The position numbers were made by a program, and so were the translations under genes. The notes under the pieces are model-generated. The model ran no database searches, was not told the DNA's origin, and was given only the letters and a program-made list of their open reading frames with translations. Positions 91-57,650 of a stretch of DNA of 64,000 nt are shown here, piece by piece; positions within the stretch are counted from its first letter, which is position 1; each line of letters opens with the position of its first letter. The DNA is taken from the sequence record ON631220.1, one strand, 5' to 3'.

Positions 91-1974
91 TTATTCTTCA
101 ATACCAATGACCGTATTGCGTTCATTGGTGTTCTCTACGGTTGAACCACTTGGGAAGCTACTGACAGATGCTTGCATTAGTTTCAACATGTCGATAGCAA
201 ATACTCGATATGTAGATTCAACCTTAGCGTCGTCGTACGATGCATGAATGTTAAGAATGGCATTATCGGCCCTTTTAGCCAGCAGATATACATCCTCAAG
301 AGCATCTTTATCTTTAATAGTGGATAGCTTATGTTTGTAGATATCCCCATTGACAGATAGGTCAGGATACTGGGCTACCCAAGTGTCCGCAATAGTCTTA
401 GTGTTGTTAGACAGAACGTCAATGATAACGTTAGCTGCTTCCACAATACCGGTAGCATCAAGCAACTTAATCTTAGCACCAGCATTATCTGGCCATTTGG
501 GTTCTTGGAAGTTTGTCTTTACATTGGGTTTCCATTCAGCCAGAAGAGTAGCGACTTTCTTAGGGTCTTGCCAATCATTCCCTTTGAACAGATTAACCAC
601 GGGGGCTAGTATCTTACTGTTCTCATCCAGAACTTTCTGGTTGTGACGATCAGCTTTAGCTACAGCATTAGTGATATTGGCTTTTGCGGTCTTAGGATCA
701 TTAGACGCGAACGTCTCGTAACTCGATACTTTTACTTCGCCGGTTTTAAGCTTTGCTTCTGCCACCCATTTGGCATCACCATAGGTACTTTTCAGTGTAG
801 CAATAGCTTTCTTCTTTTTATCAAGATTGATCTCAGGGCCAGAGTCGAAGATACTCTTAATGGTGTCGATAAGACCTTCATTTGAGACTTGTATAAAACC
901 GGGAGTATTAATGATGGACTTCTCTACATACCCGCCACGAATAACTCGATTTATAAAACCATTAAGACCACTACCAGTTTCGGCCATATCTTTCATGATT
1001 TCTATATTTGTTTCACCAGCACTCTGGGCATTGTATAAATAATAAGAACCATCTTTAAATTTTAGTATAATCCAGTCATCTCCAGTTAGATATGAATCAA
1101 TATTACTATCATTCATACTTTGGTATTTAATGAATTCTGGATTAGTACTTAGTACTTCTTCAATAAACTCTTCTAATGCCGCAGAATTATTAATAGCATC
1201 AACAGGTGGAATTTCACCATCAATGGGTTCAGTAGTTGGACCAGTAACAATGGCAGGTAACGGATCCTCCTCTACAATAACAGTTTCTTCCACTGGTAGA
1301 GCACCACATGAAGCATCAATTAGTTTATTAAAACTACTAATGATCTCACCAAGTGCTACAAGAACTGCTGGCTGTTCAACTTGTTCAACTTTAGCAATAC
1401 CAGTTTCTGTAAATTCTTCAGTGATTCGGTTATAAACTTCTACTAGTTGGTTAGTAAGTTCTGCTACTTTTGGCAGAGTCTGCTTAGACAGAGGTTCAAC
1501 TACAGTTGTATCTGCTTCAACAAAAATAGAATCATCTTCTTCTAAACGGCTAGTATTAGCTGAGCCAGCTGTGAAGTTATAAGGCATATCTTGAATTACT
1601 TCATTAATTTCAGATGCCTCCATATCTTCATTTAGACGACCACTATAAGTACGCATCATACCTTCTGCTTCTTTAATAGTGGAATGCGCTAAGCGTCCCC
1701 AATCACCACGCATAATACCGCGCTCGGTAAGACCGCGTGCAGCTGAACCAAGATCAATAGGTTCTTCAATAAATGATTGTTCTTCAACCCACTCTTCATT
1801 ACTGTAACATTCTTTTAGAATGGTTTTAAATTTAGTACTAAAGGGTTGTAGAATCTTTTTATCTACTTGTTCAACATTTGTTTTAAAGTGTTCTAGACTT
1901 GGTGTAGCTTTTGAAGATACTTTTTCAGTACCGCTATATAGCGTACGGTTTAGGAAGTTTAGCATTTTATTCAT
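91..1974 (-). CDS. Internal head protein, phiKZ gp303-like, with acidic propeptide-like N-half and a KTSC-like domain
   Basis: 627-aa ORF next to the RNR genes; Glu-rich N-half; S-N-E/GLIDTIK fits the S/A/G-x-E cleavage consensus of phiKZ head protease gp175. Confidence 0.6.
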   Translation of the reverse strand: MNKMLNFLNRTLYSGTEKVSSKATPSLEHFKTNVEQVDKKILQPFSTKFKTILKECYSNEEWVEEQSFIEEPIDLGSAARGLTERGIMRGDWGRLAHSTIKEAEGMMRTYSGRLNEDMEASEINEVIQDMPYNFTAGSANTSRLEEDDSIFVEADTTVVEPLSKQTLPKVAELTNQLVEVYNRITEEFTETGIAKVEQVEQPAVLVALGEIISSFNKLIDASCGALPVEETVIVEEDPLPAIVTGPTTEPIDGEIPPVDAINNSAALEEFIEEVLSTNPEFIKYQSMNDSNIDSYLTGDDWIILKFKDGSYYLYNAQSAGETNIEIMKDMAETGSGLNGFINRVIRGGYVEKSIINTPGFIQVSNEGLIDTIKSIFDSGPEINLDKKKKAIATLKSTYGDAKWVAEAKLKTGEVKVSSYETFASNDPKTAKANITNAVAKADRHNQKVLDENSKILAPVVNLFKGNDWQDPKKVATLLAEWKPNVKTNFQEPKWPDNAGAKIKLLDATGIVEAANVIIDVLSNNTKTIADTWVAQYPDLSVNGDIYKHKLSTIKDKDALEDVYLLAKRADNAILNIHASYDDAKVESTYRVFAIDMLKLMQASVSSFPSGSTVENTNERNTVIGIEE

Positions 1975-2030
1975 GTCTACTCTCTCGTTGATGACTGTTA
2001 ATAAGAGTGCTATAGAATTGTTAGCATAAA

Positions 2031-2050
2031 CCCTCCCAATTAAGGGAGGG
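2031..2050. terminator. Hairpin CCCTCCC-AATTAA-GGGAGGG
   Basis: Perfect 7-bp stem between genes; same 20-mer recurs at 3708-3727. Confidence 0.75.
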
Positions 2051-2059
2051 TCATTATGT

Positions 2060-2476
2060 CTACATTATTTCGTAGGTACCATCAGACATTTCTACAATAG
2101 TTACAGACATGTCTGGTTCTAACTTCTTATTTGTGACGATTTGATTCATGTACAGTTTACCATGATCTTCAATGATCATCTTACATTGGTAAGTTTCTGT
2201 TGCAGCCATGTTATTACCGATAGCACCGCCAGCTGCCCCACCAATCAGACCTCCAATCCAACTACCCGATTTACCAAGAAGTGCTTTACCCACCGCAGCA
2301 CCGGCAGCAGCTCCGACGGTGCCTCCAATAGTTGCACCAGCGATACTATTATCTTTAGCTACAAGTTGGCAATCGACTTGTTTAATAATCCCACTAGTGG
2401 TTGCTTTAATTTCACTGGCTTCAAGAGTCATAGATACGAGTACTAAGGATAGTGCAAGAATTAATTTATTCATCAC
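2060..2476 (-). CDS. Glycine-zipper membrane/secreted protein
   Basis: N-terminal hydrophobic signal; GATIGGTVGAAAGAAVG...GGLIGGAAGGAIG two-helix glycine zipper. Confidence 0.7.
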   Translation of the reverse strand: MMNKLILALSLVLVSMTLEASEIKATTSGIIKQVDCQLVAKDNSIAGATIGGTVGAAAGAAVGKALLGKSGSWIGGLIGGAAGGAIGNNMAATETYQCKMIIEDHGKLYMNQIVTNKKLEPDMSVTIVEMSDGTYEIM

Positions 2477-3636
2477 ATGAAATCTACTTCGAATTCTTCT
2501 TCTTCACCAACATCATTCACAACGTTGACCATGTAATCAGGTTTCTCTTCTTCTTGAGGAGAAGCTTGGGTTGATGAAATGTCTAGGTAGTCTTCCATAT
2601 AAAGAAGTGGGTTCTTCTCTGGCCAAACAAAATCAAATCCAGCTGATTCTTTAAACTCTACTTGATACTGTTCTACAACATCATTTTCAATACTTAGGAA
2701 TGTTGCTGCGGCATTAGCATTGAAAAGTACCCAGTTAATAAGTTTAGTCGCATTAACACCAGTCAGTTCACGACCTTCAGAGAATAGATAATTAACCCAG
2801 GTAACTTCAGTCTTTACAATTTCCCATAGTAGTTCAATGATTTTATCTTTACATTGACTGTAAGCGAGTTTACCACGTTCAGTTGCCAGTAGTGCACGAA
2901 TAACTTCTTGACCATATTGCGCATGGATTTCGAATTCGTCTTGGGCAATCTTCTTAACAGCAGCTGCAATTTGCTGGAATGCACCGGTGCGACCAATAGC
3001 AAAGGTTACTGCAAAGGATGCCATGAACTGGATACGTTCTAGGAAATACAGAGCGATGAAGAACATGAATACTTTATTGTAAAGTTCTTGATCATTGGGT
3101 ACCTGATTAAGAGCATACGCGTGAACTGCATCATGCGCCTCACCCATAGTACGGGCTACTGCAACCATCCGTTCTTGTGCTTCTTCTACCCTAAGAATTT
3201 CATCTAGAATAACTTTAGGATCTTTAAAGCTATTACGTACAATTTCAGAATAAGTTAAAGCATGTACGTCTTCATTATCATTAATACGTACATATCCTGC
3301 CCATACTCGTGAATCTGTCATGACAGGTGATAGAATATTAACAATGGAACGACTGGCTACAGAGTCAGCTTCCCATTGCCAGGCCAGTGTCTTAATCATC
3401 ATGTCATAAGTTGATTTATCACACGTTTCAAATTCTACTAGACAAGTGGAAAAGTCAAATTCTAGCTCATCCCAATCAAGCATCTTTAGACGCTTATATA
3501 GCTCCCACATTTTAGGATAATGAGTGTGGATTGAATCTAGTAGACCTGGATCATCTCCAAGAATAATTTCCGGTAGATGATAATCACTCTTAGCAGCATT
3601 GAAGATTTTCTTTGGTAGTTGAGATTTAGTAGACAT
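2473..3636 (-). CDS. nrdB: Ribonucleotide reductase class Ia beta subunit
   Basis: WEADS, NEDVHALTY (E-x-x-H plus radical Tyr), ERIQF, DEFEIH, C-terminal SPQEEE...Y tail; adjacent to nrdA. Confidence 0.95.
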   Translation of the reverse strand: MSTKSQLPKKIFNAAKSDYHLPEIILGDDPGLLDSIHTHYPKMWELYKRLKMLDWDELEFDFSTCLVEFETCDKSTYDMMIKTLAWQWEADSVASRSIVNILSPVMTDSRVWAGYVRINDNEDVHALTYSEIVRNSFKDPKVILDEILRVEEAQERMVAVARTMGEAHDAVHAYALNQVPNDQELYNKVFMFFIALYFLERIQFMASFAVTFAIGRTGAFQQIAAAVKKIAQDEFEIHAQYGQEVIRALLATERGKLAYSQCKDKIIELLWEIVKTEVTWVNYLFSEGRELTGVNATKLINWVLFNANAAATFLSIENDVVEQYQVEFKESAGFDFVWPEKNPLLYMEDYLDISSTQASPQEEEKPDYMVNVVNDVGEEEEFEVDFM

Positions 3637-3705
3637 ATCGGTTCCTTTACAATTTAAAAATATTTCTTACAATAAATAATAGAGGTTAGTATAAATTGGG
3701 AATAA

Positions 3706-3729
3706 CACCCTCCCAATTAAGGGAGGGTG
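3706..3729. terminator. Hairpin CACCCTCCC-AATTAA-GGGAGGGTG
   Basis: 9-bp perfect stem immediately after the nrdA stop. Confidence 0.75.
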
Positions 3730-3736
3730 TATACAC

Positions 3737-6025
3737 TTAAAGAGTGCACGAACCGCCTGCACACCCAACTTCAGCATTAGTTACCTCAACAGCACGTTCA
3801 AGTGATTTAATGTCAAGTCCTGCCGCTGTTTCTAGATTTACATAATACCGGGTTTTCATTCCACGTTTCACCATGTAGAAGTGATTACTTAGCATTTCAT
3901 TAGAAGAGATCTTTTCCGAACCTACAATGCGTCGATAGAGGTCTGCACTGATTGTTTGATCAGTCCACTTTTGAATAATGGCATAGCAGTCAATAAGATC
4001 TTTAGTGGGGATATCATAAGCTGATTCATACACATAGGAATCATCATCTCCATATGGAGCAGCCCATAACACACGTGCGCCATTATCAGTCTTATTCAGA
4101 ATTAGACGACGTACCGGATATGGACCATTAGTTGACCCTAGTGCTTTAGATGATGCCTCACCAGGCATGTATGCAGCTAGTACGGAGTGTGCAATACCAC
4201 CATTCTCCTTAATCTCTTTCTCTAGCTCATCCCATGGATAAAGTTCTTCAAAGCCACCTTCGATGATAGTATCCACTGACTTATTATAAGTCTTACGTGG
4301 AGTCCATCCCTCTGGCCATTTAGTCTTATGAATCCAAGGCGCATTCCCGCGTTCTTTAGAAATCTTAAGTGATGCCTTAATGAGGAAGTACATATGCCGT
4401 TCAGCAATGAAGTGGATTTCAGCTTTACCAGCATCGCTACTATATTTAAGACCAGCACGTGCCATATGCGTGGCTAGACCCATGATACCAACACCAGCGC
4501 TCATTCGATTCTTAGCGGTTAGTGCAAGGTGTGGGAAAGCATACTCTGCATTAAGGATACAATAATCAATCATCTTAAGTGCGTAGTAAGCAGCCATTTC
4601 ATAAGTTTGCTTATCAGGAACATTATCCACTGCAATAGCAGCCAGTGAACAAGTAGCAATCTCGCCGCGCCCGTGATCCTCACTAGAATAAAGATCTTCC
4701 ATTCGATAGTAAGGCTTAGTGGGTTCTGCGATTTCAAGGCATAGGTTAGAACTGTAAATAGGTTCTTTAAATGGCGTATGATGATTGAGTTCATCAATTT
4801 GAGCTGAATAGATGGTTCCAGTCTCATATGCTTCAACTAGCATTGATTTGAGAAGATCCCGAGCATTTACATAAGTTTTCTCAAATTTAGGATCCGCTTC
4901 ATATTTTTCATAAAGCTTAATAAACTTATCAATATCGCCACTATAGAAAGCATCATGTAAATCTGGAGCAGTAAATGGATTGAATACAAAGATCATGCCA
5001 TCTTTCTGAGCCGCTTTCTTAGCAAAGAACTTATTACTTAGGAATGCATAGTGAAGATCACGGTTCTTCCTATCCTCAGTAGAACGTGGATTACGTAGCT
5101 GGGTAATCATATCTGCTTCAGGATCGAAAGCACTATAGTAACACGTAACAGCACCACCTCGACCATTCTGTAGGTTAGCCCTTACTGCTTTACCCATTAC
5201 ATCGATGTATGGTTTCTTACCTTGGTGAATGATTAGACCATTACGGATAGGATCACCAATTGACCTAGTCATTAAGTTAACACCAATACCTGCTGATGAT
5301 TGGGTCATGATGTTGGCAATATAATCACCCATTGCCAGTGATACGCCATTATCACCAGAAGCAAATAGGCAGCATGATGCAAAACCACGAAGCTTAGTAC
5401 CTAGATTAACGTAGTTAGGTGTTGGGGCACTAAGAATTTTATTAGAAAGTAGTTTATAGTAATTCTCCACATGGGTCATGCGAGTTTCAGCTGGCTCTTT
5501 TTCAGCTAGAGCCATTGCCATTCGCATATATACAAACTGGGCAGTCTCATATTCTTGACCAGTTTTACGATTACGTAGAGCATACTTTCCACGAATGTGA
5601 TGAAGTGAAAAATGCGGACAAAGTAGGTCAAGATCATGATCAATGATCTTTTCAATCTGAGCGTATTCTTTACTACTATAATCTAATTTAACAATGATAC
5701 CATCTTTACGCATCCTGGTTTGAAGCGCTTTAACAGTTGGGATGCCATTTAGACCATAGAACTTCTTACGAAGATAAATCGCATATAGTCGACCAGCCAT
5801 TAGATAATAAGACCATGTCTTACGATTTAGACATTCTTCAATAAGTTGTAATTGTAGTTCTTGTGATGAAGTTTTATCACCAAGAGCTTGAACAGCATCC
5901 ATCACAACACTACTCCAATCCACCTTATCGCCAAGATGTTGGGCTGCCCATTCACCCCAACCATTAATCTTAGCAGGTGAGTATGCTTCTTCAGTACCGT
6001 CTAGTTTAATGATAGTTTTTAACAT
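3737..6025 (-). CDS. nrdA: Ribonucleotide reductase class Ia alpha subunit
   Basis: SAPTP, ASCCL, SSNLCLEI catalytic motif, MPGEASS, KTRYY, C-terminal CAGGSC; start moved to MLKTII at 6025. Confidence 0.97.
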   Translation of the reverse strand: MLKTIIKLDGTEEAYSPAKINGWGEWAAQHLGDKVDWSSVVMDAVQALGDKTSSQELQLQLIEECLNRKTWSYYLMAGRLYAIYLRKKFYGLNGIPTVKALQTRMRKDGIIVKLDYSSKEYAQIEKIIDHDLDLLCPHFSLHHIRGKYALRNRKTGQEYETAQFVYMRMAMALAEKEPAETRMTHVENYYKLLSNKILSAPTPNYVNLGTKLRGFASCCLFASGDNGVSLAMGDYIANIMTQSSAGIGVNLMTRSIGDPIRNGLIIHQGKKPYIDVMGKAVRANLQNGRGGAVTCYYSAFDPEADMITQLRNPRSTEDRKNRDLHYAFLSNKFFAKKAAQKDGMIFVFNPFTAPDLHDAFYSGDIDKFIKLYEKYEADPKFEKTYVNARDLLKSMLVEAYETGTIYSAQIDELNHHTPFKEPIYSSNLCLEIAEPTKPYYRMEDLYSSEDHGRGEIATCSLAAIAVDNVPDKQTYEMAAYYALKMIDYCILNAEYAFPHLALTAKNRMSAGVGIMGLATHMARAGLKYSSDAGKAEIHFIAERHMYFLIKASLKISKERGNAPWIHKTKWPEGWTPRKTYNKSVDTIIEGGFEELYPWDELEKEIKENGGIAHSVLAAYMPGEASSKALGSTNGPYPVRRLILNKTDNGARVLWAAPYGDDDSYVYESAYDIPTKDLIDCYAIIQKWTDQTISADLYRRIVGSEKISSNEMLSNHFYMVKRGMKTRYYVNLETAAGLDIKSLERAVEVTNAEVGCAGGSCTL

Positions 6026-51134: not shown

Positions 51135-53015
51135 ATGGCTGTTAACGAAAACGAAATCGGCACCGTTCAAACTCAAGCTACTGCTCCTGCTCCGCAACCC
51201 ACTGCACAGCGTCAAGCTCAACGTCCTACTGGCGCGCCTGGGTCTACTACTGGCATTAACCATCTAATGCGTCGCTCTGGTCGACTAGATGGCTCTGATG
51301 CTCGTTCAGCAGATGCCCTACAAGTATTCACTAAAGTAAAAGAAGAAGCAATCCGCCATCAGGACCTACCTGATGACTTCGATATCCATCGTTTCGATCG
51401 TGATGCGCAACAAGTTGGTATGGCTGGTCTACTCATTGTTAAACTAGCTAAAGATATCAATGGTTCCATGAAGGCATTCGTTCGTACTCTAGTACTCGAT
51501 AACCTACCTGGTACTCGCATCCGTCCCCGTACCCACAAAATCAACAATGGTCTAACCGACGACATCATTGAAGAGAAGGTACTACCGCGTGATGTATTCA
51601 CTGCTCAATACTGGAGCAAGATCGGCGAGTTCCTACGGAACCGTTACAACATCCCTGGTCTAGAAGTACTATCTGCCGGTCCCCGTGCAGTGTATGCTGA
51701 CTTCGACTTCAAAGATGAACTAGCTGTTAAGAACCTACTAGTTGAATCTGTTAACATCTGTGAAGATGCTATTGCACGTCGTAACAATGAGACTCCGTTC
51801 TCTATTGCGACCCACATCAAAGCAGAAAACGAACAGCTTACCTGCAACCTAGACTACAATGGTATTCCGGTTAAAGATAGCTGTGGTAATCCGATCCGTT
51901 CTGACATGGTCATCTCCACTAGCCGTGGTAAGAAAACCAACGTACCTGAGAACGAGTTCTATGATACCGATAGCCAGCTAAACCAAGTTAGTCTATTCGT
52001 AGATCTACATTGGACTCCGACCACTGGCCAGCAACAAGGTATGTTTGGCGTAACTCTACCTGGTGCAGCTCTACCTCCGCAGTTCACTCCTTACATCGTT
52101 ATCACTGACGTTCGTAAGGCATCCTGGATCCAAGCATGGACTCTAGAAATGTGGCTGTTCGCACTCGGTAATGCGTATCGTGCAACTGCATCCCAGGCAT
52201 GGGCTCGTACCCTAATGCCGAAGATCGCTACTAGCAAGATGCGTGATATTGGTGCACTTGGTTATTACTCAGAGCTAGGTAAAGCGATTGAAACTCGCAC
52301 CGAAGCATTCATGGCAGACGACAGCAACTTCGTAATGCTAATGAACAAGATGGTTAACCAGAACCCTGCATTCCAGATCGATATCGATCCAATGGGCGAC
52401 AACTCAGCTATTGAGCAAGTCATCCTAGATGCAGCTGGTGGCGTAAACCAAGCTCGTGCAGTTAGCCTGATCTTCCAAGCTCTAACTAACCTATACGGCA
52501 CTGATTTCCGTCAGTTCTATAACCTAGCTGAAGCTGGTCCGATTATCTTTGACAACCATCATGAAGTAGACCTCGGTCACTACACTGATGAGCATGGCGA
52601 ACTAAGCGACCGTCGTGATCTTGACGTTCTAGGTGCCATGAACATGTCTGAAGGTAATGACCAAGAGTGGAAGACCTGGTATGCTACTCAGGTAGGTAAT
52701 GACCACATTGTGCGTCGTATGAATAACAGTAAAGGCTTCGACAAGATGTACCTAGGTAACGTTACCTATACTGGTCGTGCTCGTCGTCTAACCTTTAACC
52801 CGAAATTCATCACCGCAATGGATGCCGCAGCAGCAGCCGCTGGTGTAACTGTAACCATGGAAAACCTAATTACCAACTTCGGTCAACAGCGCTTCGCTGG
52901 TTACACCGGTATGGGTAACATGGCTGTTTCTGGTAGTGCACAAGTTGGTATGGCTGGCAGCATGGGTCAAACTTACGGCGCTCCTTCCTATAATGCACCG
53001 GGTACCTGGTACTAA
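51135..53015 (+). CDS. chmA: Chimallin / PhuN, major phage nuclear shell protein (phiKZ gp54)
   Basis: 626 aa, flexible N-terminus, recognised sequence; canonical position immediately upstream of the nvRNAP beta-prime gene. Confidence 0.92.
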
Positions 53016-53409: not shown

Positions 53410-54546
53410 ATGGGTCTTTATGCCAAAGTTGTTGATCATAATGAAGTTCATGATCAATTTACGGGTAAACGAATTTATGCCAATGATTACAATACGAGTA
53501 ACTCAGATGAGAAAGAAGAATTTGATAGGCATTTCTATTCTCATTTCCAAGATTCAGAAGCAATTGAAAGTAGTGTAAGCTGTGATTGTCGAGCAATCGA
53601 AGACGCACATAAACTCGGAGTAATCTGTGATATTTGTAATACTCCAGTTGTCAATACTTCTAGCCGTCCTATCGAACCATCAATGTGGGTTCGTACACCA
53701 AAACATGTACGTAGTCTAATTAACCCACGTTTAATCATTATGCTAACCGGATATCTAGTAACTAAAGAATTCGATTTCTTAGCATATCTAACTGATACTT
53801 CTTATCGATACGATGTGGAATCTATTGGTTCTAAAGAAACACGCAGAAAAGTAGATAGGCTACTGCATCGTGGATTTGAAAGAGGATTAAATCACTTCAT
53901 TGATAATTTCAATGAGATCTTCCAATTCCTACTAGATGCAAATATTATCTCTAATAATAAATCCGAATTCGCTCAATTCGTTGCTCAGAATAAAGATAAG
54001 TTATTCCCTAAATATTTACCAGTTCCTTCTAAACTCTGTTTCGTAGCAGAATCAACCACATCTGGTACTTACTTAGATAAACCAATTGAAGCAGCAATTG
54101 ATGCTACCTTAACCTTCGCTAGTATTGATGCATCATCTGTACCACTTAGTCCAATTAAAGCTCAGAATAGGACTATGCGAGGACTAAGACTATATGGCCA
54201 GTTCTACGAGATCTACGCAAAATCACGAATTGCTCAAAAGCCTGGTCTTGCTCGGCGTCACATGTTTGGTGCTCGTCTCAACGCTACGGCACGTGCAGTA
54301 ATCACTTCTATTAGTGACCCGCATGATTATGATGAATTACATATCCCTTGGGGAGTAGGTTGTCAATTATTAAAGTATCATCTAACTAACAAGTTAAAAG
54401 CTAAGTTTAACATGACAACTCGTGAAGCATTCTCATTTGTATATGAGAATGTACTTCAATATAACCAAATCATCGCAGATCTATTTAAAGAGTTAATTGC
54501 AGAAGCAGCCCCTTATAAAGGGATGGGTTGTACTTTTCACCGAAAT
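53410..54546 (+). CDS. nvRNAP beta-prime N-terminal subunit (phiKZ gp55-like), exon 1 (379 codons)
   Basis: Zn-finger CDC...CDIC, RRHMFGARLNATARAVI; ends FHRN at a U-ending 5-prime splice site. Confidence 0.9.
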
Positions 54547-55796
54547 TAATCTATTAAGTTAAAGCGCTACAGATTCTGGGTGTGGTAACCAGGAATCTCT
54601 AATGAGGAATTATGAATGAAGAAATAAGATGGCGTAAAATACCTGGTTTCAATAATTACGAAGTCAGTGATCATGGTCAAGTTAGGAACCTTAAAGGCGA
54701 ATTAATCTCACAACACGAGAATAAGACAACTAAAGGTACTTACCTTACCGTTAACATCCACAATGATGACGGTATTAGAAAGATTCGTTATGTTCATCGT
54801 TTTGTGTGCATGGCGTTTCATGGGTTACCTGAAAACTTTAATGAGTTGGACGTTAACCACAAAGATACCATTAAGCATAATAATCATTACCTTAACCTAG
54901 AGTGGGAAACTCGTAGCGGTAATGTTAAGCATGCATTTATAACCGGTGCCAATAAACATGCACTCGCTGTTAAATGTACAAACATTCTGACTGGTGAAGT
55001 AAATAACTTCATCTCGATGAAAGAAGTAGCCGAGTTCCTAGAGCTTGGTCACAATAAAGGGTTACATGTCGTATTGGGTCATTTAGTTAAACCATTCAGA
55101 GGTAAATATGTATTCGAAGTAAGTGGGGATTATCACCCACAGAAGCGTAAGAATGCAATTGAAGTTTATTGCATAGACTTCAAGACCAACACCTTTGGAC
55201 GATATGTAAACCTAACGCAGTTACAACTTAGAACCGGGTTAATTAAAGGGTCAGTGCAGGACATTTTAAAGAAACCAGATCTAAGATTATTCAACGGTGT
55301 TGTTATCTGTAGGGTCGATGATAAGGAACGGCTATTCGAATACGTTTCTAACCTAACCCAAGAAATGGTTAACAAATCCATTGATGATTACAATAGATAC
55401 AAAGCGCGTAGAGAGAAGCTACATACCACCTAAGCAATTAGTGTAGCGACTTAACTTAATATGGGTTTCCTTGTATCAGAAATGATACTCGACAAAACTT
55501 CTTGAATTGCTGGAACAACTCGTTAGGTCAGTTAGCTACAATAGTTCCGAAAGGTTCTATGAATGCTTAAGAATAACTGAATAGAGTCAATCAGCAGCTA
55601 AGCCGCTAAGTTACTTAACTGTAATATGTGGAACGTTCAACGACTAGTGCATTGGCACGTAGGGTCCAAGTGGACTCGAAGTGGGAAGCACCTTACTGGG
55701 TAAAGCCAAAGGTGAAGATATAGTCTCAACGTCTAGCGAGAGCTAGAGCTGCACGTAATGGTGCGGGTTAGCCTAACGAACTAACTGAAGATATTG
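54547..55796 (+). mobile_element. Group I intron 1 (1250 nt), ORF 5-prime of the ribozyme core
   Basis: P AATTGCTGGAA 55505, Q AATCAGCAG 55589, R GTTCAACGACTA 55635, S GAAGATATAGTCT 55714; ends in G; removal restores HRN-PTLQ. Confidence 0.93.
54612..55433 (+). CDS. Intron-encoded HNH homing endonuclease (NUMOD4-HNH-NUMOD1 type)
   Basis: WRKIPGFNNYEVSDHGQVRN; VHRFVCMAF...VNHKDTIKHNNHYLNLEW...N; GAGGA RBS. Confidence 0.9.
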   Translation: MNEEIRWRKIPGFNNYEVSDHGQVRNLKGELISQHENKTTKGTYLTVNIHNDDGIRKIRYVHRFVCMAFHGLPENFNELDVNHKDTIKHNNHYLNLEWETRSGNVKHAFITGANKHALAVKCTNILTGEVNNFISMKEVAEFLELGHNKGLHVVLGHLVKPFRGKYVFEVSGDYHPQKRKNAIEVYCIDFKTNTFGRYVNLTQLQLRTGLIKGSVQDILKKPDLRLFNGVVICRVDDKERLFEYVSNLTQEMVNKSIDDYNRYKARREKLHTT

Positions 55797-55922
55797 CCAA
55801 CGCTTCAACGTGGATCTACGCAGCAGTTCTTTATTACTAAAGTAAAAGATGACATTAATGATAATTCTATCAGCATGTCAGTTTTATGCCTTAAGGCTCC
55901 AAACGCAGATTTCGACGGAGAT
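55797..55922 (+). CDS. nvRNAP beta-prime exon 2 (42 codons) carrying the catalytic NADFDGD motif
   Basis: PTLQRGSTQQFFITKVKDDINDNSISMSVLCLKAPNADFDGD; missed by the ORF track. Confidence 0.93.
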
Positions 55923-57446
55923 TTTAATTGGTCTCCTAACCTTCTTAATTGCTGGAACCTCCTTAGAGCCTAACTACCAAAGCAGATAGCGAAAGCTAAA
56001 ATGTAACGGTTTGAAAAGTGTTAGGATTGGACAATCAGCAGCGAAGCTTCTACGTATTGCCGTGAGGCGAGATAGGAAGAACGTTCAACGACTATCGAAA
56101 CCACTGCGAAAGCAGCCAAGGGAGTAGAGTAGGGCCAAGTGGTCCGAAATAGAAGGCTTCCCTCTGGGAAGAAGATATAGTCTCACCATCTAGTGAAAGC
56201 TAGAGCAGTTACTTAATGTCGGGAGATATTAAGTGGACGGTACAGCAGCGACATGTCTTCCAATGGAGGATATGTGTTTATTTACAGTCGTATACCCAAA
56301 TCGAGAGAAATTGTGATTCCCGGTACATTCGGGCGTTATAGACTGACTCTGGATGGGTTAGTCTATGATCGATTTTGGATAAATTGATAGATCCAATAAA
56401 CCGACATTACGTTCTTGAATTACCATGGCATAGACTACCCATTCATGTTACTAAGTTGATAGCAGTGTGTTTTAAAGGCTGGCATGCGCCATTAGAGTTT
56501 GTTAGCCGCTGCGAAATATTGTTTTCTGATGGAGATGAAGACAATATTCATCCTAGAAACTTGATTTGGAAATTCCCGGAAGAAGGATTGGAGGTTCCCA
56601 CCTTCCCAGGATATTATTTCATCCCTAGTTTTACCTGCTATGCAATCAATGATGAACTCAAGGTCATAAGTCTTTTTGAAGGTTCAGCTAAATTAACAAG
56701 TTTGGCGACAACTGGATACAGAGATCTTGGATTGCGTCGAGATGATGGCACCTATGTAGGAACGAATTTACACCGTGTAGCTGCACTGACATTTATTGAA
56801 TACGATAACACCATCAATGAGAAAGTGGTCAACCACATAGATGGTGATCGTGACAATACAGTACCCGATAACCTAGAATGGGTAACCCAGAGTGAAAATG
56901 TGTTGCATGGAAATGCAATCAAAACCGGTTATATTGGATCAGCAAAGAATACCGCGATCATGAGAATGTTGAAAAATCGCGGAATTAACACGGACGGAAT
57001 TGTTCTTGAGCACGACGGTATTGAGATAAAGGATATCGTTACGGGTGAAATCAGGAAATATGACTCGCAAAAGAAAGCAAGTGAGGCGATAGGGGTTAGT
57101 GTAGGTACGATTTCTTTGAAAGTTAGCGGACATGCAATTTATCCAGTCATTATGGATAGGTACATTGTACGTCGGGTTGGTTCAGAATGGCCAACCTGGG
57201 ATGAATCCATTGAGTATAGTCAGGCTAAAAAATAAGACCACACTTGTGAAAAATGTGGAAACTGGCGAGATTTTGAAATACAAATCAGCCAAGCAGGCAT
57301 ATCTCGATCTTGGATTATCAAAGAAAGTAGTAACTAGCAAACTCAAAAAGAAAGACCGTCGACCAATTAATGGGTTCATTTTTAAATATGAAAATGACCC
57401 AGATGATTTTTAGACATGTCGCTGACGATGCTGTATGAAGATAGTG
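55923..57446 (+). mobile_element. Group I intron 2 (1524 nt), ORF 3-prime of the ribozyme core
   Basis: P1 GGAGAU/GUCUCC with U-G at the splice site; P 55947, Q 56033, R 56083, S 56171; long-range stem 56241-56258 with 57412-57435 encloses the ORF; ends in G. Confidence 0.93.
56274..57413 (+). pseudogene. Intron-encoded HNH endonuclease interrupted by two compensating frameshifts (about 379 aa if repaired)
   Basis: GGAGG then GTG start with a NUMOD4-like IPGTFGRYRLTLDGLV; shift in a T4 run near 56372; HNH core NHIDGDRDNTVPDNLEW; shift in an A6 run near 57230 into a NUMOD1-like tail. Confidence 0.7.
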
Positions 57447-57650
57447 CAACTTAATTTAACATTAATGCCCGATGTGTATTTAACCAAAGCAACTGAACGC
57501 ATCGCGCCACATACATGGGTTCTATCTATTGATGAACCACATGAAATCTCAGGTAACCTTGAATTACAGGGTCCTGTTGTAGAAACAATTATTAACTGGG
57601 CACATGAGAAGTATTTACCGCCATTAGAAGAGTGGCTAAAAGCAAAATAA
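57447..57650 (+). CDS. nvRNAP beta-prime exon 3 (67 codons; phiKZ gp56.1-like)
   Basis: QLNLTLMPD... continues DFDGD-Q as in other beta-prime subunits; preceded by the intron terminal G; spliced product 488 aa. Confidence 0.9.
   Translation, partial: QLNLTLMPDVYLTKATERIAPHTWVLSIDEPHEISGNLELQGPVVETIINWAHEKYLPPLEEWLKAK

Follow-up and report, generated by a model that had tools for sequence, protein, structure and literature searches.

Group I introns that carry I-HmuI-type HNH endonuclease genes and interrupt polymerase motifs are a classical arrangement in phages. The DNA polymerase introns of SPO1, SP82 and Bastille encode nicking HNH enzymes, relatives carry different introns nearby, and flanking markers are co-converted, as established in literature that PMC12908238 cites. 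Several introns can also occupy one gene: Twort orf142 has three, and the DNA polymerase and terminase genes of Bastillevirinae have two or three, with a small internal exon and with exon skipping (PMC11878797). The endonuclease gp210 of PhiPA3, borne on an intron of the virion RNA polymerase gene, harms a relative without the intron during co-infection (Birkholz et al. 2024, PMC11620839). In phiKZ, an intron in gp55 (gp56/gp56.1) has been predicted since 2002 (Mesyanzhinov 2002; PMC10914365). We analyzed the gp55 locus at positions 53410–57650 of a 64,000-nucleotide (nt) stretch of sequence record ON631220.1, which we call the window. This 4.2-kb region matches Pseudomonas phage OMKO1 (ON631220.1, genus Phikzvirus, a phiKZ relative) at 100% identity, and phage fnug at 98.8% along the entire region. 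OMKO1 is used in phage-therapy work.

The non-virion RNA polymerase has gp55 as its N-terminal beta-prime-like subunit, which contains the catalytic DFDGD loop. We conclude with high confidence that the OMKO1 gene is split by two mobile, self-splicing group I introns, each of which has, or formerly had, an I-HmuI-type HNH endonuclease gene. We refer to the gp55 intron sites as 1 (after N379), 2a (after N415) and 2b (after D421). The locus is laid out as follows, with ORF denoting an open reading frame.

53410–54546, + strand: gp55 exon 1, 379 codons, ending ...FHRN; matches residues 21–399 of PDB chain 7OGP_A (E 1e-261)
54547–55796, + strand: intron 1, a 1250-nt group I intron between the N379 and P380 codons; RF00028, 87.2 bits
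54612–55433, + strand: intron-1 homing endonuclease gene, 273 aa, intact ORF, 5′ of the ribozyme core
55447–55748, + strand: intron-1 ribozyme core, with the P1 3′ strand, P2 and P3–P9; RF00028 model positions 1–253, 87.2 bits, E 7e-21
55463–55470, + strand: intron-1 internal guide sequence, its pairing verified base by base
55797–55922, + strand: gp55 exon 2, 126 nt, 42 codons, PTLQRGS...KAPNADFDGD; 100% identical to 7OGP_A residues 400–441
55923–57446, + strand: intron 2 (site 2b), a 1524-nt group I intron between the D421 and Q422 codons
56253–57413, + strand: intron-2 homing endonuclease gene, 3′ of P9 and the core; in OMKO1 it is spread over three frames (56253–56387, 56375–57235 and 57132–57413)
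57447–57650, + strand: gp55 exon 3, QLNLTL...WLKAK and a stop codon; 100% identical to 7OGP_A residues 442–508

As a phage intron structure, this arrangement is ordinary. It has in common with phiKZ gp55/gp56/gp56.1 the same gene, the same 488-aa product and an interruption by a group I intron that bears an I-HmuI-like HNH gene, the cores being about 60% identical. The phiKZ intron, however, follows N415, where OMKO1 has AAC for AAU, and gp56 is 34% identical to the OMKO1 intron-1 enzyme. The HNH endonucleases of SPO1 and SP82 (I-HmuI, I-HmuII) and of Bastille (I-BasI) belong to the same family as those of OMKO1, and there too the group I introns interrupt conserved motifs of a polymerase gene. 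In OMKO1, by contrast, the host gene encodes a beta-prime-like subunit of a multisubunit RNA polymerase, nicking is predicted by analogy, and the phage replicates inside a protein nucleus, so the endonuclease must be imported to act. PhiPA3 gp210 also comes from a nucleus-forming Pseudomonas jumbo phage and is likewise an HNH endonuclease encoded within an intron of an RNA polymerase subunit gene, but it concerns the virion rather than the non-virion polymerase, another gene and a single intron, and the competition was seen in the PhiPA3 system. The gp55 homologue of PhiPA3 itself, gp054, is uninterrupted. Twort and Bastillevirinae, like OMKO1, have several group I introns in one essential phage gene with short exons between them. 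Those are other genes of Firmicute phages, whereas the short exon of OMKO1 is the RNA polymerase catalytic core, and in the related phage KEN49 an exon between introns is reduced to 18 nt. What is new is the presence of three alternative intron sites within 144 nt of the polymerase active-site motif in related phages. In the literature that we searched, we found no account of introns at site 1 or 2b, of the cluster of three sites and its recoded flanks, of the 18-nt exon of KEN49 or of an intron copy in a second genus, though these may still be published.

The joined product carries much of the evidence. We searched the three exon pieces one by one against the PDB, where chain 7OGP_A (named 'PHIKZ055' and 'DNA-directed RNA polymerase, PHIKZ056.1') is phiKZ gp55 with a 20-aa tag. 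The pieces tile this chain end to end with 0 gaps and 0 overlaps, and exon 1 also matches the AR9 beta-prime-like subunit 7S00_d. Joining 53410–54546, 55797–55922 and 57447–57650 gives 1467 nt, in frame, that encode 488 aa and a stop. The product is colinear with the uninterrupted homologues PhiPA3 gp054 (488 aa, 71% identity), 201phi2-1 gp107 and Psa21 gp058, with gap-free junctions. Its predicted mass of 55.7 kDa agrees with that of native gp55 purified from phiKZ-infected cells (56 kDa, PMC4666361). An earlier note on this DNA had proposed these junctions and the 488-aa product, and both are exact by the tiling, the in-frame join and the alleles with empty sites. Exons 1 and 2 are contiguous in phiKZ, PA7 and 30-1, which fixes the limits of intron 1 to the base (54547–55796). 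Similarly, site 2b is empty in phiKZ-type alleles, where ...GGCGAT runs directly into CAATTG..., which fixes the limits of intron 2 (55923–57446).

Both introns lie in the most invariant DNA of gp55, intron 1 at an NRxPTLxR-type motif and intron 2 at NADFDGD. Site 1 falls in what we take to be the conserved NRAPTLHR-type (NRxPTLxR) motif of bacterial beta-prime subunits, and exon 2 spans from that motif to the NADFDGD at its end, carrying the catalytic Mg-binding Asp triad. With this motif in a homologue of a solved beta-prime-like subunit, gp55 belongs to the beta-prime double-psi beta-barrel proteins. Exon 2 has a weak Pfam match to RNA_pol_Rpb1_2, and exons 1 and 3, searched singly against Pfam, gave no matches; for these, the PDB search settled the identity. 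In the phiKZ structure paper, the catalytic loop is 417-DFDGD-421, followed by Q422 (PMC8287921). Consequently, intron 2 separates D421 from Q422 and follows the final Asp codon of NADFDGD with no base between, as the earlier note had placed it.

The two inserts were also claimed to be genuine group I introns with complete core elements, and the covariance evidence bears this out. We scanned the whole window against Rfam at the gathering threshold (a score of 50 for RF00028). Only two matches reached this level, both to RF00028, on the + strand and over the full model: the intron-1 core (87.2 bits) and, for intron 2, positions 55901–56205 (model positions 1–253, 74.8 bits, E 4e-17), a span that takes in the P1 strand in exon 2. 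Against the same model, the corresponding introns of eight related loci reach 74–90 bits, with three matches in KEN49. Both OMKO1 introns have the U·G pair in a P1 of 5–6 bp, the 3-bp P10 and the terminal G that characterize group I introns. The P1 of intron 1 joins GUUUC (55465–55469) to exon GAAAU (54542–54546), with the pair U54546·G55465 at the splice site, and its P10 joins UGG (55462–55464) to CCA, the first bases of exon 2. For intron 2, GGAGAU (55917–55922) pairs with GUCUCC (55931–55936) in P1, with U55922·G55931 at the splice site, and CAA (57447–57449) pairs with UUG (55928–55930) in P10. The base before each intron is thus a U (U54546 and U55922) and the last intron base a G (G55796, which ends the 3′ tail after the intron-1 core, and G57446), in agreement with what had been noted earlier. 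When seven introns from three sites and lineages were compared, 31 of the 62 consensus pairs had compensatory changes on both sides, and in the consensus fold these changes occur in P3, P5, P6, P8 and P9. P7 is missed by a pseudoknot-free predictor; its strands are present at 55635–55646 and 55714–55726 in intron 1 and at 56083–56094 and 56171–56183 in intron 2.

The position of the endonuclease gene differs between the introns, as previously described: it lies 5′ of the core in intron 1 and 3′ of it in intron 2. Alignment with the ORF-less site-1 introns of KEN49 (350 nt) and PA_ZH1 (305 nt) places the intron-1 ORF in the loop of P1, downstream of the 5′ splice site and upstream of the guide. 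Its domains are Pfam NUMOD4 (1e-9) and HNH_3 (1e-7; 31.8 bits, above the Pfam cut-off), and it matches I-HmuI (PDB 1U3E) with an E of 2e-6. A hairpin hiding the ribosome binding site 5′ of this ORF was considered and dropped, as the minimum-energy fold has no clear sequestering hairpin.

The intron-2 gene is broken into three frames in OMKO1, which the earlier note had missed. The site-2b intron is 99.8–99.9% identical in fnug, PA7, W10-2 and Brmt, and in fnug and PA7 the endonuclease is an intact 386-aa ORF whose ATG corresponds to window position 56253. Only two differences separate the whole OMKO1 intron from the fnug and PA7 copies: a T4 instead of T5 run at 56373–56376 (−1) and an A6 instead of A5 run at 57226–57231 (+1). 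Jointly, the two homopolymer changes shift the frame of the middle part of the protein, which holds the HNH domain. The breaks are either real decay or sequencing or assembly error, both being in homopolymers. We used the intact fnug copy for our searches, rather than reading the broken OMKO1 ORF through its frameshifts. In the intact fnug/PA7 form, the domains are HNH_3, NUMOD1 and an I-HmuI NUMOD-like domain, and 1U3E is matched with an E of 2e-9; the middle fragment of the OMKO1 ORF still has HNH_3 at 42.2 bits, above the Pfam cut-off. The ORF-less site-2b intron of KEN49 retains the first 15 nt and the last 12 nt of the endonuclease ORF, indicating that it is a deletion derivative that lost the endonuclease.

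The relation to phiKZ is other than had been supposed. The earlier note knew of one HNH intron in phiKZ gp55 (gp56/gp56.1) and suggested aligning the beta-prime genes of phiKZ, KTN4, SL2 and others. In our comparison, phiKZ has neither OMKO1 intron, and OMKO1 lacks the phiKZ site-2a intron. The gp56 intron occupies a third site, which follows the N415 codon (...KAPN) and precedes the OMKO1 intron-2 site by 18 nt; its 3′ end abuts GCTGATTTTGACGGCGAT, which codes for ADFDGD. Therefore, with sites 1 and 2b filled in OMKO1 and only 2a in phiKZ, the two phages differ at three sites rather than by a single additional intron.

We read the architectures directly from 12 loci, given below by site. All three gp55 sites lie within 144 nt, and each is seen with and without an endonuclease gene.

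phiKZ: site 1 empty; 2a intron with HNH gene; 2b empty
30-1: site 1 empty; 2a ORF-less intron; 2b empty
PA7: site 1 empty; 2a empty; 2b intron with HNH gene
OMKO1, fnug: site 1 intron with HNH gene; 2a empty; 2b intron with HNH gene (broken in OMKO1)
KTN4, fMGyn-Pae01: site 1 intron with HNH gene; 2a intron with HNH gene; 2b empty
ANB1: site 1 intron with HNH gene; 2a intron with a shorter ORF (NUMOD1, no HNH match); 2b empty
SL2, Churi: site 1 intron with HNH gene; 2a ORF-less intron; 2b empty
PA_ZH1: site 1 ORF-less intron; 2a ORF-less intron; 2b empty
KEN49: site 1 ORF-less intron; 2a intron with ORF; 2b ORF-less intron

Double introns are thus common within Phikzvirus, and the suggestion that the double insertion might be specific to this strain fails: fnug has the same pair, six phages (KTN4, fMGyn-Pae01, ANB1, SL2, Churi and PA_ZH1) have sites 1 and 2a filled, and KEN49 has all three. 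For the wider distribution, we searched each intron across 51 Phikzvirus records. Site 2a was filled in about 40 of them, site 1 in at least 17 phages, and site 2b in OMKO1, fnug, PA7, W10-2, Brmt and KEN49; the exact OMKO1 combination (1 and 2b) was otherwise found only in fnug. The MRostami-2023c record could not be classified and was excluded from the counts. T2P and Wadjak 1 have an uninterrupted exon 1–2 ORF and an ORF-less 2a intron. None of the Phikzvirus loci that we read has an intron-free gp55, and other genera do have intron-free forms. A scan of IMG/VR found the PA7 genome alone with the site-2b junction and nothing with the site-1 junction.

Two of these loci have features of their own. 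The gp55 gene of vB_Pae3705-KEN49 (1638–3874) contains three RF00028 matches, at 1640–1939, 3097–3418 and 3466–3769. Its 2a and 2b introns are parted by an 18-nt exon, GCTGATTTTGACGGAGAT (3469–3486), that encodes ADFDGD alone and must serve two ribozymes, the first as its 3′ exon and the second as its P1 partner. The phiKZ-type intron opens with GGACAATTGAAT (phiKZ locus 1746–1757), repeating CAATTGAAT (3136–3144), which opens the last phiKZ exon 18 nt downstream of the 3′ splice site of the 2a intron. The CAATTG within the repeat is self-complementary, and the repeat could be a relic of insertion or a long-range pairing.

The earlier note held that the two introns invaded independently. For the endonuclease genes, the evidence agrees: the intron-1 and 2b enzymes are 26% identical and occupy different loops, and identities of 26–34% together with these loops indicate that the genes were acquired separately. 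Judged by their sequences, the three endonucleases are distinct members of one I-HmuI-like HNH family. The ribozyme cores speak against independent origins. The cores of the three sites align throughout at 56–66% identity, with the compensatory changes described above, and contain patches of near-identity that follow the genome and not the site. In P9, the OMKO1-type intron 1 and the phiKZ-type 2a intron are exactly alike over 37 nt, and the site-1 and 2a introns of PA_ZH1 have another P9 version in common. This sharing of P9 points to a possible exchange among neighbouring introns, or to one intron lineage that may have spread to new gp55 sites. Elsewhere in intron 1, the P6 hairpin (55600–55632) exists in two versions of different sequence, that of OMKO1 and fMGyn-Pae01 being 6 nt longer than that of SL2 and KEN49, with the remaining core almost identical; this is a local hairpin swap in an otherwise conserved ribozyme. 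Outside the window, positions 186376–186562 of the phiKZ record and 254521–254653 of the OMKO1 record match the intron cores at 86–88% identity, and presumably are the same intron family in other genes. The literature names phiKZ gp72 and gp179 as predicted intron endonucleases (PMC10914365).

Mobility appears to have left a mark on the flanking exons. Between OMKO1 and fMGyn-Pae01, whose second intron is another one and is placed elsewhere, exon 1 has 3 differences in 1137 nt and intron 1 has none. There are then 20 differences in nt 1231–1332 of the spliced gp55 gene, and one more at 1449. This recoded block of about 100 nt corresponds to window positions 55890–55922 and 57447–57515, and brackets sites 2a and 2b. 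Eighteen of the 20 block differences, all but those at 1231 and 1233, also separate OMKO1 from phiKZ, and these eighteen are synonymous; exons 2 and 3 encode the same protein sequence as in phiKZ, so every nucleotide difference between OMKO1 and phiKZ in these exons is synonymous. The block has GGA in place of GGC, as required for P1 pairing of the 2b intron, and AAC in place of AAU, so that OMKO1 lacks the U that the 2a intron needs at its splice site. The block looks like the pattern expected of homing with co-conversion of flanking exon. An ORF-less 2b intron also occurs at the same codon boundary in the Pawinskivirus phages PS119XW (3001–3362, between NADFDGD and QLN) and phiLBG22. These introns are 86–92% identical to the Phikzvirus copies, with exons only 64–75% identical, which indicates transfer of the 2b intron between genera.

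In the mechanism that we infer, each intron would be excised by two transesterifications, the first initiated by guanosine, as established group I biology leads one to expect. The first three intron-1 bases (54547–54549) form an in-frame TAA stop after exon 1, and translation of an unspliced message would end at this UAA, giving a 43-kDa fragment without the active site. By analogy with known homing, when relatives co-infect, the HNH enzymes would nick the intron-less alleles of those relatives close to where the introns insert, and repair would then copy the intron with a short stretch of flanking exon. As Ceyssens reportedly described in 2014, the non-virion polymerase transcribes the phiKZ middle and late genes. 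gp55 provides the catalytic loop of this polymerase, which is built from early gene products (PMC8287921). Because this loop belongs to the middle and late polymerase, the phage would depend on both splicing events, and the earlier note's view that middle and late transcription would depend on them is upheld for the catalytic subunit.

Several points weigh against this mechanism. Putzeys et al. found no spliced reads for the predicted gp56, gp72 and gp179 introns in phiKZ long-read cDNA under their conditions (PMC10914365), so splicing at gp55 rests on protein-level and comparative evidence. The missing reads sit oddly with the 56-kDa native gp55. Intron 2 may have lost its mobility from OMKO1, its endonuclease gene being frameshifted twice in this assembly. 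The activity of the OMKO1 endonucleases, their target sites and their import into the phage nucleus are predicted.

We weighed three other explanations. The introns could be domesticated regulators, where splicing efficiency in the ribosome-free phage nucleus sets the timing or amount of the non-virion polymerase and skipping of the 126-nt exon yields a catalytically dead gp55. Exon 2 comprises 42 codons, and exons 1 and 3 would therefore join in frame; identical P4, P6 and P7 strand sequences in both cores could give hybrid folds; and exon skipping by phage group I introns is known from Twort and from the SIOphi terminase gene (PMC11878797). However, the presence of each intron varies freely among near-identical phages, including alleles without intron 1, which shows that neither OMKO1 intron is needed for the life cycle. 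Skipping through P10 fares no better, as the intron-1 guide pairs with two of the first five exon-3 positions, and these are non-adjacent. We consider a regulatory role improbable.

A truly split gp55, with exons that encode separate polypeptides assembling in the polymerase and with free-standing HNH genes between them, is slightly less probable still. Other RNA polymerase subunits of phiKZ-like jumbo phages are already divided into several genes (PMC7598289), a TTG one codon 5′ of exon 2 opens a 59-aa ORF, and the phiKZ transcriptome without spliced reads (PMC10914365) would fit. Yet both inserts contain full group I cores whose P1 and P10 pair with the exon ends, and exon 3 does not open with a start codon of its own. 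In sister phages the pieces form one contiguous ORF, and native phiKZ gp55 is 56 kDa, its solved chain being continuous across the second site. That the two-intron arrangement is an artefact of the OMKO1 record has a negligible chance: both frameshifts of the intron-2 ORF are in homopolymer runs, a typical error type, but the independently sequenced fnug has the same structure at 98.8% identity and each intron recurs in several other genomes, which refutes an artefact as the origin of the introns.

Two mobile introns remain our explanation for the OMKO1 locus, and they bear on its annotation. The OMKO1 GenBank record labels all ORFs of the gp55 locus 'hypothetical protein', and the catalytic subunit of the middle and late polymerase is thus mis-annotated as four unrelated ORFs. 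The neighbouring gene 5′ of gp55 (51135–53015) is a homologue of the nuclear-shell protein phiKZ gp54.

More tentatively, the 144-nt stretch at the gp55 catalytic loop might be a battleground of three rival intron-endonuclease lineages, where each allele occupies its own site and synonymously recodes its neighbours; we regard this as possible, but on balance doubtful. If it were true, OMKO1 with sites 1 and 2b and phiKZ with site 2a would each be armed against the other, at three targets lying side by side, and in a shared cell the intron make-up would decide the winning genotype at the polymerase locus, or the infection itself by interference of the sort demonstrated with PhiPA3 gp210. The natural allelic series of near-identical genomes, in which three sites each occur with and without an endonuclease gene, offers a good handle for experiments. 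It suits tests of intron endonucleases as drivers of marker exclusion or of interference competition between nucleus-forming phages, and it lets group I splicing be tested where transcription and translation are separated. If phiKZ-like phages that differ in their introns were mixed in one cocktail, they could undergo gene conversion at gp55 or interfere with each other there.

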